A DNA stretch of 64,000 bases from Blastocystis sp. Blastoise. Lineage: Eukaryota; Protista; Bigyra: Opalinata. The translations under genes were made by a program, and so were the position numbers. The stretch lies in the NCBI GenBank assembly GCA_039096225.1, contig JBBPEB010000009.1, positions 558,001 through 622,000 on the forward strand, given 5' to 3'. Every line of letters begins with the position of its first letter. Position 1 is the stretch's first letter. This document shows, piece by piece, positions 7,114-61,307 of this stretch. Under the pieces are notes generated by a model. The model made no database searches. It saw only the letters and a program-made list of their open reading frames with translations, and had not been told where the DNA came from.

Positions 7114-9006
7114 ATGGATCATTTAATGAATAAAAAAGCTGCTATTGTTGAATTAAGACGAAGAGCAAGCTATAAAAATCAAGTTGGAGGTCATAATCGA
7201 ATGATTTATCTTTTAGATGGACGAGTATAGAATATATATTTATTTGATTGACAATAATTTTTGCATTGACTATTTATTTATTATATTTTTAGATTGCAAA
7301 GCCTTATTCTTATAGTGAAAGAAAGAATTATGAAACAGTTATTTCGAAAGAAAAGCCACTCGTTGACTTCTTAGCAACCTATTTTGGTACTTTTTCATTC
7401 TGTGAAGTAAATAAAGGAGCTGACCTTCAAACTATCAACAGTGAATCGGAGATCCAAATAGTCAAAGATGAAAAAGCAGAATTATTAGAAGGAATGTATC
7501 CAATTGCTGTAGATAATAACCGATTTCTAGTATTATCTGATTTAGCAGCTAAATATAATAAACCCTGTATTTTAGATATAAAAATGGGAACTCGAACTTA
7601 TTGTATATTTATGTTATTATATTTTTTATGTTTATATATTTTTATGTTTATATATATATATATTTGTTTACTGTGTTTATTATTATATATATTATTATAG
7701 GGGATGGAGCTCCAGAGTTTAAGGTTCAACGTCATATAGAGAAAGCTTTAAAGAGTACGACTTCAAAATTAGGTTTACGATTATGTGGAATGAAATTATA
7801 TAGTATTATTATATTTATTATATTTATTATATTTATTATATTTATTTATTAAATTTATTATATTATATTTATTATTATATTTATTATATTTATTTATTAA
7901 ATTTATTATATTATATTTATTATTATTTTTATAAAATATTATATTTATTATTATATTTATTATTATATTTATCATTATTATAATCCTCTTTATTCTATAT
8001 ATATATAGTTATATCGACCGTATTCCCAGTCTTGGATAGTAAAGGAAAAGAAATGGGGAAAGACTTTAAATGTTCAAGATATATTAATGTCTTTATCTGC
8101 TTTCTTCTTTGATGGAAAACAATTAAGAAAAGATATTATTAAGAAGATTCTTCATCGACTGTTATTATTAAGAAGTGCTATTGAAAAAGTATATTATTAT
8201 TATAGTTATTATTATTTATTTTATTAATTTGTTTTTTAAAATATGTTTTTATGTATATATCAATTTATAATTGTTTTATTATTATTATTATTATTATATA
8301 TAGTGTCCTTGGCGTTTTTGGTCATCCTCGTTATTATTTGTTTATGAAGGAGAAGATTGGACTATGGAAGATATAAAAGAACGATCTGAACGAAATAGCT
8401 CTATAGATATTAATATAGATAGTTATATAGATTATGATATAGATTTATGTCCAGAAGAACAAGAATTAATTAATATACAAACAAAAGAACGTGAAAAGAA
8501 TTCTATTTCACGAGGAGATGACGGAGTTGACCGTATATTTAAAGCAGAACATGATGAATGGGACCATATTCCCGCGGATGTTAATATTATTGATCTTGCC
8601 AATTGTAACTTTGATACTAATTTTGATACTCCTGATGAAGTATATATATATGTTATTATTATTATTATTATTATTATTATTATGTTTATTATGTTTATTA
8701 TGTTTATTATGTTTATTATGTTTATTATGTTTATTATGTTTATTATTATTATTATTATTATTATTATTATTATTATTATTATTATTATTATTTATATATA
8801 TTATTATTATTATTATCTGAGATATTATTTATATATATTATTATTATTATTATCTGAGATATTATTATAATATAAAAATGAATGTACTTCTATTATCAAT
8901 ACATATATAGGGTTATTTATTTGGATTAAATAATTTAATTGCCTATATGCGAATAATGGACAAATTAGAAATTACTCCTGATTTACTTGAAAAAATGAGA
9001 ATATAA
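7114..9006 (+). CDS. Inositol polyphosphate kinase (IPMK/IP6K family)
   Basis: Motifs QVGGH, PCILDIKMGTRT (PxxxDxKxG), GLRLCGM, SSLLFVYEG, IDLA and GYLFGLNNL after splicing. Confidence 0.92.
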
Positions 9007-10047
9007 ATTAACTACAATTATTTGTTTTGAGTATATTCAATAAGATTCTATATTTACTATTTATCATACGCTTCTACTTGTTTATTTCTTTTAGTTTTTT
9101 TTTTGTACTATTTTTTTTATTTAATGTTTCTATACACTATTTTTCTTTTTACATATATATTTCTAATTATTCTCTTTATCAAGTATTTTTATCTTTTTCA
9201 TTTTATTTTTTTATTTTGACTTGAATCATAATGAATACTGTCTCTGACTTTTCTTAACATACATATATATTATTTTTTCATTATTTATTTTGAAACATAT
9301 TTTAAGCACATTTTTCTAGGTTGATTTTGCTATTTTTTATTTTTTTTGTTTCTCTTCTGTACTTATTATTTCATTAAGATTTAAAGCTAACTAGATTTCA
9401 AGAAAATCATTTATATAAAAATAACAAAACACAAAGATAACATAATATTTACGTTTTATAAATAGTTTGCTCTCAAACACATGCGAAAGGAAAAAAAATG
9501 ACATGACAGAATCAACAGAAAAAATATAAAAATATGAATAATACAAACATAAATAATGACTGAATACAACGACAAGAATATCAAGGTTCTCTTGTAAATC
9601 ATGAACTTTTATCCAATATAATAATTAATATATATATATATATAATTAGAACATGACTCAACATAAAAATAACACCTTGTCAATGAAACTACATAAAAAA
9701 TGTGAAAGCAAAAAAATAATAAATATGAAAAAAGGTGAAAAAGAAATTGATTCACTTGAAGAAATGTTTGTAAAAAGAGTAAAAAAAAAAGAAAATTAAA
9801 AGGAAAAAGAAAAAGGAAAAAGAAAATCTAATAAAAAAAATACATATATTCTTTAAACAAAGACTATAGTACAAGACAAAGTAGAGAATATGTATATAGA
9901 ATAGACTAGAATTAATAGCTAGATATTACATAGTAAAATAGACAATAAGAAAGAATATTCAAGCCATAATTATCCCACAAATAAGATACCATAAATAATA
10001 TATGATATATATGATATATATATATATATATATTATATAAGTATAAC

Positions 10048-58049: not shown

Positions 58050-58990
58050 TTTATATATATTTATTTTTTTATATTCTTATATGTTTTTAAAAAATTATAA
58101 TAAAAATATTTTTATTGCTATTTATATATAAATCGCTTATTTTTCTTCTTTTTTTTTATTTTTGATGTGTTGTATTATGTAAAAATAATTAAGTATTATT
58201 TTATAATATAGGTATACTTTTAGTTTTTATTCAATAAATATTTATATATTTATTGAAAAAGAGAAGAAAATAACAGTGCTCTATAAATCTATGATCAGGT
58301 CGATTCATTTGTTTTATTTTGGATATTTTACTGTATTATTCTGTATATATAAGGTTTTAAAAATTATTTCATTCTTTGTTCTAATCATTTTTTTTTTATA
58401 AAGTCATTCATCTCATTTTCTTATATTCATGAATCTTGTTTTTCACTCCATAATATTCAGGATCCATTTTTTTTCAAATGAGAACTCTATTTTTTATTAA
58501 AGTTTGTATTTATTTTCGAAATGAAGATGAAATAAATGCATTGATGAATTAATTATAAATAAATCTTTTGTCTTAATTAGTGATCATTTCAAGTAATTCC
58601 AGTTTATTCTAATGAAATACAATTAATATGTAGAATCAACTTGAATGTTTTTACACATGATCAAAAAACGAACTTATCTCTACATGATGATAAAAACCTT
58701 TGTTAACATTAAAAAGAAATTTGTATTCATCATTCTTCTGTAACCAATCAAGTGTTGAACATCTGAATTTTAAAGAGTTCTCTCTTTTGGAATTATTTAT
58801 TTTTCCCTTAAAGAAAAGTATTTTCCCACGGATATCTAGTATTTCTAAAAATATATGGAAGCAAAAGCCTTCTCATGACACCACTTGAGAAACAGAATAT
58901 TTTGTTTGCTTCCTTTTTTTCTAAAGAGAAAAATAACTCAAAAGAATATCACATAATTTTTTAAATAAATAATAGATAATATAAAATAAA

Positions 58991-61307
58991 ATGTCAAAGC
59001 CAGATATTGCAGAAGATTGCATTAATCCTGATTTTGATCTCATTGTAATAGGTGGTGGTTCTGGAGGTATGGCATGCTCAAAGGAAGCTGCTGATCTCGG
59101 TGCTAATGTCGCCTTATTTGATTATGTAAAACCATCTCCTCAAGGATCTGTTTGGGGTCTTGGTGGTACTTGTGTAAATGTTGGTTGTATTCCTAAGAAG
59201 CTTATGCACCAAGCTTCTATTATTGGTGAATTCTTAGAAGATGCTAAGACTTTTGGTTGGGATGTACCTAAAGTAAATCATCATTGGAAGACTCTTGTGA
59301 ATAATGTTCAAGATTATATTCGTGGATTAAATTATTCTAGTCGTAGTACTCTTCTTTCTAAGCATGTCACTTATTATAATATGCTTGCTAAAGTTACAGA
59401 TAAATATACTGTTGAGGGTACTGATGTTTTTGGTGAAAAACATACATTTACTGCTCGTCGTATAGTTGTTGCTGTAGGTGGTCGTCCTAATAAATTAGGT
59501 TGTCCTGGTGATGAATATGCTATTTCTTCGGATGATCTTTTTATGTTAAATCATAATCCTGGGAAAACGCTTCTTGTTGGTGCTAGTTTTATTGCTCTTG
59601 AATGTGCTGGTTTCTTACATCATTTAGGGTATATTTTTTGTTGTTGTTGATTTATTTTTATTGTTGTTGTTGTAATTTTATTGTTGTTGTATTTTTATTG
59701 CTGTTGTAATTTTATTGTTATTGTAATTTTTATTGTTATTGTAATTTTTATTGTTATTGTAATTTTATTGTTATTGTAATTTTTATTATTATTGTAATTT
59801 TTTATATAATTATTTGTATATTATAATATGGTTTTATTATTTTCATTATTATTATTATTATTATCTAAATATATATATAGATTTGATGTAACTGTAATGG
59901 TTCGTTCTATTCTTCTTCGTGGTTTTGATCAAGAATGTGCTACTCAAATTGGTGATTTTATGAAAAATCAAGGTGTTCACTTCTTACATGGATATGTTCC
60001 TAGTGAAATATATATTATGTTATTATTATTTTATTATTTTTAATTTTTTTTTTGATTATTATTTTTTTAAAATTAAAAATAATAATAAGTTTTATTATAT
60101 ATAAATAATAAAGAGAGAAGATGGTAGATATTTAGTTAAATATAGTGGTGCTGCTTTAGCTAATGCAGATCTCACAGGAGAAGAAGTTTTTGATACTATT
60201 GTTTCTTGTACTGGTATGTTATTTTTATTGTTATTTGTTTTATTAATATAGTTTTTATTGCCATTATTTGTTTTTATTATTATTATTTTTTCATATTATT
60301 ATTTATTTTTACAATAATAATAATTATAATGATAATAATATATAGGTCGTTATGCTGATGTAGAGAAATTAGGTTTAAAGGAATTAGGTATAAAGATGAG
60401 AAAAGGAAAGATTATGTGTGTTAACGAACAAACTTCTATTCCTAATATATATGCTATTGGTGATGTTCTTTATGGTGGTAAAGAACTTACTCCTGTTGCT
60501 ATTCAAGCATATATATATTATTATTATTATTGTGTTTGTTATATTTATACTTATTATTATTATTTATAGGCTGGTAAATTACTTGCTAGACGTTTATATG
60601 GTAATAGTACTGAACAAATGGATTATAATGGAGTATATATATATGTAATATAATAATATAATATAATAATATATATATATATATATATATATAGGTTCCT
60701 ATGACAGTATTTACACCTCTTGAGTATGGTAATTGTGGTCTTACTGAAGAAGATGCTATTGAACTATATATTATATATTATATTATATTATATCATTATA
60801 TAAATACTATTATGATTAATCAATTTATTTACAAATAACTATATTCTTATTGTATTGAACAACTTGGTGATGATAATGTTGATGTTTATATATCTTATTT
60901 CACTCCTTTAGAATGGAAAATGCCTGAATCTAGAGTTAAAGATAAGTGCTTTGCTAAATTAGTTATAAATAGAAATACAAAAGAAATCATTGGTTTCCAT
61001 ATCTTATCTCCTAATGCTGGTGAAATTACACAAGTATATATAATACATAAATAATAAATAATAAATAATAACTAAATAAATAATAATAATAAATAATAGC
61101 TAAATAAATAATAGCTAAATAAATAAATAATAATAATAATAAATATATATTCTATAGGGTTATGGTTTAGCTATGAAGGCTCATGCTACTTATGATGATC
61201 TTATGAATGTAGTAGGTATTCATCCTACTATAGCTGAAGAATTTACTACTATTTCTACCACGAAACGTAGTGGACTCTCTGCTAAAAAAGGAAGTTGCTG
61301 AGGTTAA
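58991..61307 (+). CDS. TXNRD: High-Mr thioredoxin reductase, selenoprotein (C-terminal GSC-U-G)
   Basis: [37 protein letters not shown]; ends GGA AGT TGC TGA GGT TAA. Confidence 0.96.

Follow-up and report, generated by a model that had tools for sequence, protein, structure and literature searches.

A 64,000-nucleotide (nt) window of the genome of Blastocystis sp. Blastoise, a Blastocystis of the tortoise gut (GenBank assembly GCA_039096225.1, contig JBBPEB010000009.1, positions 558,001 to 622,000), contains AT-rich segments that interrupt protein-coding genes and whose ends depart from the GT...AG rule. Six such segments, two in the gene for thioredoxin reductase (TrxR) and one each in genes for an inositol polyphosphate kinase (IPK), an ABCC transporter, a bHLH-like protein and a protein termed 'Fab1', are read here, on balance and from the genomic sequence, as probably genuine introns that would be removed despite a first and/or last base other than G, under relaxed end-base rules. 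A preliminary description of the window had listed eight segments with unusual ends. Their end bases, read directly from the window, were confirmed for all eight, and the odd segments proved to be real features of intact, conserved genes. That description had missed what is the strongest regularity of the set, namely that short direct repeats span the boundaries of five of the six odd segments and that the base at every odd end is a copy of the exon base on the other side of the junction. It had also grouped with them a lipase intron and a GC-AG intron, which are assigned elsewhere below.

Two odd-ended segments interrupt the single-copy thioredoxin reductase gene

The TrxR gene (58991-61307, plus strand) comprises eight exons, is single-copy in the genome and probably ends in Cys-Sec-Gly, where Sec is selenocysteine (TGC TGA GGT TAA). 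Two proteins of 494 amino acids, P0158 and P0272, were obtained from ENA contigs of 1,755 and 1,730 bases (L005 and L004), each of which carries one unbroken reading frame, and these contigs were therefore taken as spliced messenger RNAs (mRNAs) of related strains. Both align exon by exon to the window gene at 71-80% nucleotide identity, and the eight window exons correspond to P0158 residues 1-213, 214-255, 256-291, 293-345, 346-366, 367-389, 390-447 and 448-494, so that removal of 60008-60104, 60507-60569 and 60764-60859 neither gains nor loses residues. Non-synonymous divergence (pN) was 0.06-0.19 in each of the eight exons, with synonymous sites near saturation, and this applies equally to the exons that follow the odd segments.

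To locate the junctions, each in-frame, stop-free boundary pair within 36 nt was scored with local scripts. At 60008-60104 (plus strand; AT-AA in the preliminary description), a 5-nt repeat, AAATA, yields six equivalent registers (AA-AT, AA-TA, AT-AA, TA-AA, AT-AT and TA-TA), all scoring 205 and none with a canonical end; removal joins ortholog mRNA residues 255 and 256. The best canonical pair nearby, GT-AG at 60019-60115, scored 184. At 60764-60859 (plus strand; described as CT-AA), the 8-nt direct repeat TATTGAAC yields nine equal registers scoring 209, with GT or AG in none of them and no AG anywhere inside the segment, and removal joins residues 389 and 390. The sole 'canonical' option there is an in-frame AT-AC pair at 60768-60863, which scored 202 and replaces AIEQLG by AIELFG. 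The third segment, 60507-60569 (plus strand), joins residues 345 and 346 and scored best as GC-AG; it had been listed among the oddities and is an ordinary intron, GC-AG ends being unremarkable.

The published gene model illustrates the consequence. NCBI protein KAK8809649.1 (P0166, 413 amino acids; window 58991-60835) matches at 99.5% over exon 1 and at 100% over the last aligned stretch. At the first odd segment it takes the GT-AG pair 60019-60115, which replaces SEIIKREDG by SEIYIIEDG, and at 60764 it reads through to a stop, with loss of the dimerisation domain and the redox-active C-terminus. The published annotation is thus already damaged, the TrxR model going wrong at both odd introns, by a misplaced GT-AG pair and by a premature stop. 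Protein searches for RNA-derived TrxR proteins of the same strain found none, the matches being the NCBI model and the mRNAs of related strains.

Several further features of the gene were observed. The TGA GGN TAA ending (window 61296-61307) is kept in the two related-strain mRNAs and in two human-gut Blastocystis contigs (L039 and L042), which suggests from the sequence that the protein has a Cys-Sec-Gly selenoprotein end; gene models stop at this TGA, and an Rfam search of 61290-62000, downstream of the gene, detected no selenocysteine insertion sequence (SECIS) element. In human-gut Blastocystis, the TrxR of ENA gut metagenome contigs (L039-L042) has one exon of 337 residues where the tortoise strain has six introns, and since that single exon covers the region, these contigs cannot date the tortoise introns.

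Odd-ended segments in the IPK, ABCC, bHLH-like and Fab1 genes

In the IPK gene, the segment at 7796-8008 (plus strand; TT-AG) carries a 6-nt direct repeat, TTATAT, which allows seven equivalent registers. The flanking exons match positions 29-58 and 60-120 of the Pfam IPK model, and the first residue of the downstream exon fills position 59, so that the domain is contiguous after removal. Reading through meets a stop, and one in-frame GT-AG path, found by hand, would drop eight domain residues. The genome holds no IPK paralogue for comparison.

The ABCC segment at 51161-51280 (minus strand; TT-AG, equivalent to TA-GT) has a repeat of 1 nt. Its removal as TT-AG gives WSED-V-TC, to be compared with WSEDKTC in two related mRNA-derived proteins and WSEDQTC in an intron-free paralogue; the pattern WSED-x-TC occurs in four ABCC homologues, the window copy matches it solely when 51161-51280 is removed, and the best canonical alternative scored 107 against 123. 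Two paralogues have normal introns at the same position and in the same phase, GTATAT...TTATAG in L014 and GTATGT...TATAG in L013. The position of the intron is therefore old, and the window copy has T in place of G at +1, which fits a tolerated G-to-T change at the first base of an old intron. Intron density differs sharply among members of this gene family: five paralogues (L008-L012, on C4, C2, C8, C19 and C14) are intron-free open frames of 857-917 residues, and the open frames at the match in the window copy and in L013, L014 and L015 span 133-184 residues, introns being seen in L013 and L014.

The bHLH-like gene contains a segment at 10979-11068 (minus strand) that reads GT-AC with a 9-nt direct repeat, TTATACGTA, or AT-AC in the variant 10979-11062. 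These boundaries alone carry the downstream exon in frame into a canonical GTATAT donor; Pfam found no HLH domain in the upstream exon. The 'Fab1' segment at 22800-22844 (minus strand; 45 nt, GT-AA) carries an 8-nt repeat, ATATATAA, and its removal alone maintains a single frame across three small exons that follow and that have canonical introns; homology gave no support for either gene. The assertion that exact removal of the odd segments is needed was thus upheld by homology for IPK, ABCC and both TrxR segments, where no GT-AG or GC-AG pair fits, and the backing for the bHLH-like and Fab1 genes comes from reading-frame continuity.

Direct repeats span most odd junctions and odd end bases copy the exon base across the junction

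Boundary direct repeats were found in five of the six odd introns, with lengths of 6 nt in IPK, 9 nt in the bHLH-like gene (GT-AC register), 8 nt in Fab1, and 5 and 8 nt in TrxR at 60008 and 60764, compared with 1 nt in ABCC and 0 nt in the lipase intron. For comparison, 17 canonical junctions were resolved in TrxR, in ABCC and in three paralogues of the latter. Two of these 17 have a repeat that reaches 5 nt and none has one of 8 nt or more (Fisher test against the odd introns, p=0.003 and 0.011, respectively); when the 5' context of one intron was paired with the 3' context of another, 3% of pairs gave 5 nt or more and 0.5% gave 8 nt or more. In addition, the odd end base equalled the exon base across the junction in 8 of 8 cases (chance about 1e-4 to 7e-4). 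With direct repeats across the boundaries, the true cut sites are not readable from the DNA. The contention that the first intron base takes all four nucleotides accordingly holds in the registers originally chosen and depends on that choice, because the repeats allow 2 to 10 equivalent placements.

The ordinary introns resolved by homology start with GTATAT, GTATGT or GTATTT and mostly end with TATAG. Their inner consensus (TATAT at +2 to +6 and TATA at -5 to -2) was shared by all six odd donors, which read N-TATAT or GTACAT, and by five of the six acceptors (TATA-N). This sharing is of modest significance, about 0.01 by estimate, as the introns are TA-rich; TATAT occurs at 7.8% of interior intron positions. 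The proposed common xTATAT donor therefore stands for the six odd introns and fails for the lipase intron, whose donor, ATATCATT, is of the U12 type. As for the ends themselves, no register of 60008-60104 or 60764-60859 in TrxR has a canonical end, the IPK and ABCC introns keep AG alone, and the Fab1 and bHLH introns keep GT alone. Odd junctions made up 3 of about 25 in the resolved genes, a sample biased upward by the choice of genes. A codon-usage model for an intron census of the whole window was dropped, as it took TA-rich repeats for coding sequence. A Pfam L22 search of the genome for RPL17 detected two genes alone, both intron-free and probably of organellar type.

A U12-type (minor) AT-AC intron in the lipase gene

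The lipase intron (38148-38384, minus strand; AT-AC) splits the GHS/LG motif and has no boundary repeat. Its removal restores the catalytic GHSLG, with the downstream exon beginning at position 71 of Lipase_3. The donor is ATATCATT, and at the 3' end stand TTCTTAAT and then six bases, the last two of which are AC. In Blastocystis, minor introns occur widely and have AT-AC ends for the most part (Gentekaki et al. 2017; Larue et al. 2023, PMC10639083), and the lipase intron resembles these U12-type introns in its AT-AC ends, its ATATC donor, the TTCTTAAT branch motif near the 3' end and the presence of minor small nuclear RNAs (snRNAs). Genes for U11 (62.9 bits), U6atac (63.8 bits) and U12 (46.8 bits, below the Rfam cut-off, E=6e-7) were detected in the genome, and U11 keeps AAAGGG. 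On its sequence features, the intron is thus assigned to the minor spliceosome and stands apart from the odd class with which it had been grouped; AT-AC minor introns as such are already known in Blastocystis.

The U12-type donors of the window read ATATC[AT]TT, as compared with the general U12 donor [AG]TATCCTT. Among the candidates, this pattern was found in the lipase intron alone, the donors in TrxR and in the bHLH-like gene being ATATATAT or ATATTATA. A branch motif resembling TTCCTTAAC occurs in the lipase intron (TTCTTAAT plus 6 nt); in TrxR 60764-60859 a partial likeness, TTCTTATT, lies some 14 nt upstream of the AC that ends the alternative register, and the others have none. The other candidates thereby differ from known Blastocystis U12-type introns (PMC10639083) in lacking the C at +5 and, except partly for TrxR 60764-60859, the branch motif.

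Further U12-like motif pairs lie in the window at 15143, 55959 (minus) and 24270 (minus), each with ATATC[AT]TT followed by TTCTTAA[CT] near a possible AC or AG end, which suggests several more minor introns. The lipase intron also holds a (TA) tract that continues unbroken for over 110 bases (38240-38375), with a single long hairpin predicted at -72 kcal/mol. In the U6atac gene (L026, G000:C21:544821-544937, minus), GAGCC stands just upstream of the conserved GAGAGAAGG, at the place where human U6atac presumably has the donor-pairing AAAGG. The minor-intron donor code of the lineage may thus differ beyond position +5.

Proposed relaxed end-base rules and alternative explanations

In the reading that we favour, the major spliceosome would find these sites through the conserved inner positions and tolerate other bases at both ends; the odd introns resemble ordinary major-type introns, G-TATAT...TATA-G, save at the first and last positions. 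There seem to be two origins. The ABCC intron would be an old one whose +1 G mutated, and the two TrxR introns, together with those of IPK, bHLH and Fab1, would be younger insertions or local expansions that still carry 5-9 nt of duplicated target. The direct repeats are suggestive of recent insertion or of a mechanism that they guide, and they may be a mere birth mark or a part of recognition.

The machinery was inspected for a cause of such tolerance. The preliminary description had proposed a search for substitutions in the U1 and U6 snRNAs; both are canonical, the 5' end of U1 being ACUUACCU and U6 having ACAGAGA and the AGC triad, and a change in these snRNAs was rejected as the cause. 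Loss of second-step fidelity factors was likewise rejected, as the Prp18 and Slu7 genes are present; in yeast, Prp18 loss relaxes the choice of 3' site (Roy et al. 2023, PMC10711555). The relaxed end-base rule is thus left unexplained by U1, U6, Prp18 and Slu7, and this counts against it, as do several other points. What the ortholog mRNAs indicate is the expected product, and they do not bear on whether this strain makes it or by what route. The 3' end of TrxR 60764-60859, TTGAA, departs from TATA-N, and an AT-AC reading exists for this segment. The Fab1 model requires that a perfect TATAG within the segment, whose use leads to a stop, be passed over, which is awkward for any spliceosomal model. 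Finally, neither the excess of direct repeats (5 nt or more at 5 of 6 odd and 2 of 17 canonical junctions, p=0.003) nor the copying of end bases is predicted by simple relaxed fidelity.

A further reading, which we consider unlikely, is that this lineage has a class of introns marked out by a short direct repeat over both junctions instead of by GU...AG, perhaps helped by pairing of (UA)n ends, with the spliceosome or another activity removing the insert and one repeat copy regardless of the end bases. Whatever AT-rich insertion or expanded microsatellite came to lie between repeats in a coding exon would then become an intron at once, so that both the way in which introns are born and the splice-site code would be new ones, found in a stramenopile. 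That removal itself is repeat-guided or non-spliceosomal, with the cuts set by short direct repeats and by pairing of self-complementary (UA)n ends and not by GU/AG, is to our judgement decidedly unlikely. The contrast between the 5-9 nt boundary repeats of the odd introns and the rarity of such repeats at canonical junctions speaks for it, as does the copying of the base across the junction at all eight odd ends; predicted folds pair both ends of TrxR 60008-60104 and, in bHLH, pair the palindrome TACGTA across both junctions, and Amoebophrya introners have 3-5 nt boundary direct repeats and 8-20 nt inverted repeats (PMC7789003). On the other hand, the ABCC intron has a 1-nt repeat and an old canonical position, (UA)n pairing is trivial at 90-97% A+T and the same folds are obtained for canonical introns, TrxR 60764-60859 is not a repeated family, its genome matches covering the simple-repeat part alone, and the repeats are equally readable as a footprint of origin. 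It is quite improbable that the candidates starting with A (TrxR 60008-60104 as AT-AA, TrxR 60768-60863 as AT-AC and bHLH 10979-11062 as AT-AC) are degenerate minor introns, processed by the minor spliceosome, which is known to tolerate varied 3' end bases. Blastocystis is rich in AT-AC minor introns (PMC10639083), U11, U12 and U6atac are all present, TTCTTATT precedes the alternative AC of TrxR 60764-60859, and the donor-pairing region of U6atac, placed by comparison with the human sequence, looks diverged. The minor spliceosome is nevertheless unlikely for the odd class because the donors ATATATAT and ATATTATA lack the +5 C kept in every U12-like donor of the window; U11 moreover keeps AAAGGG, the AT-AC register in TrxR agrees a little less well with the orthologues (202 against 209), and TT-AG, CT-AA and GT-AA are left unexplained.

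Still less credence is given to three further explanations. The segments could be recent unspliced insertions with target-site duplications in the assembled haplotype, function being supplied by an insertion-free allele or copy, which we regard as very improbable. The 8- and 9-nt repeats with G or C (TATTGAAC and TTATACGTA) do resemble target-site duplications, deletion of the insert and one repeat copy exactly restores the ortholog sequence, and the public RNA-guided annotation has no intron at 60764; but an essential gene present once in the genome would then harbour two of them, and the inserts, which resemble introns in size, composition and ends, belong to no mobile family. Errors of assembly or polishing that replaced G at intron ends in low-complexity sequence are more doubtful yet. 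The assembly is Nanopore-based with short-read polishing and low-complexity sequence forms 12% of the genome according to the available part of the genome paper (PMC12129017), and one wrong base would be enough for TT-AG. Such errors are unlikely because two would be needed in each TrxR intron, which is very improbable in a polished assembly, because TTGAA is more than one change away from TATAG, because C and T at +1 do not lengthen a TA run, and because errors would not make 8-9 nt direct repeats or the copying of end bases. Least credible is A-to-I editing of double-stranded (UA)n ends, by which AU...AA would become IU...AI and be read as GU...AG. This could apply to TrxR 60008-60104 (AT-AA), whose ends are predicted to pair, and to the 3' end of Fab1 alone, and an edited AA acts as a 3' splice site in the case of mammalian ADAR2. 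T or C at +1 and C at the last base would, however, be unexplained, and ADAR enzymes are known from animals only.

Genomic context

G+C content is 20-27% almost throughout the window, with a single 2-kb stretch reaching 34%. The window sits on contig 3 of a tortoise-gut Blastocystis genome of 33.34 Mb in 34 contigs with 23% G+C; the available part of the genome paper gives 33.3 Mb, 33 scaffolds and 23.1% G+C for a Russian-tortoise strain, and describes an annotation pipeline of STAR, StringTie, BRAKER3 and Mikado (PMC12129017). It states that introns are longer in tortoise strains, does not bring up unusual splice sites in that part, and reports BUSCO values of 42-43% for tortoise strains and 52-61% for human-associated and rat strains (PMC12129017). 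Odd introns may, by a link that we infer, contribute to the low BUSCO values of the tortoise strains.

Comparison with known systems

New introns of Daphnia, for which a double-strand-break repair model has been put forward, likewise appear as inserts of intron size that lie between short direct repeats within coding sequence, but there the ends are canonical GT-AG. The pattern of ciliate internal eliminated sequences is also seen here, as the AT-rich inserts are flanked by direct-repeat 'pointers' of which one copy is kept; the inserts are present in the assembly, and no nuclear dimorphism is known in Blastocystis.

A non-Watson-Crick contact between the first and last intron bases, which the preliminary description invoked, is borne out by the cited literature. 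In yeast, as would be the case here, non-G ends are usable if they dock with each other, and non-AG 3' sites are used under weak proofreading (Parker and Siliciano 1993; Roy et al. 2023, PMC10711555). The yeast cases are mutant or laboratory ones, whereas Blastocystis has Prp18 and Slu7 genes and its odd sites would be normal, productive ones. Among natural systems, the major spliceosome of the tunicates Oikopleura and Fritillaria processes many non-GT-AG introns (Henriet et al. 2019, cited in PMC7789003), as it would, by inference, in Blastocystis. The tunicate cases have been linked to a changed U2AF and to snRNA modification in the accessible part of a preprint (bioRxiv 10.1101/2025.08.15.670264), whereas U1, U6, Prp18 and Slu7 are ordinary in Blastocystis; that part of the preprint does not bring up a direct-repeat rule for the non-canonical introns of tunicates.

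By analogy, the introner class of Amoebophrya is the closest described parallel. There, as here, end dinucleotides are not fixed, direct repeats at the boundaries make the cuts ambiguous, intron ends can pair and standard annotation fails (Farhat et al. 2021, PMC7789003). In Amoebophrya, non-canonical introns exceed 60% of the total, and some form repeated families with defined inverted repeats of 8-20 nt (PMC7789003). The Blastocystis cases, unlike these, are a minority with flanks normal for the lineage; they show boundary repeats but no defined terminal inverted repeats, the pairing being of (UA)n only, and the TrxR intron belongs to no repeated family. If RNA data were to confirm these introns, tortoise Blastocystis would join the tunicates, Amoebophrya and Euglena as a natural breaker of the GT-AG rule. 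With the inner signals intact and the end bases copied so regularly, it would then be possible to test directly, in a culturable organism with public RNA sequencing data (BioProject PRJNA1041441, named in PMC12129017), what the two end bases of an intron do and how introns arise from insertions flanked by repeats.

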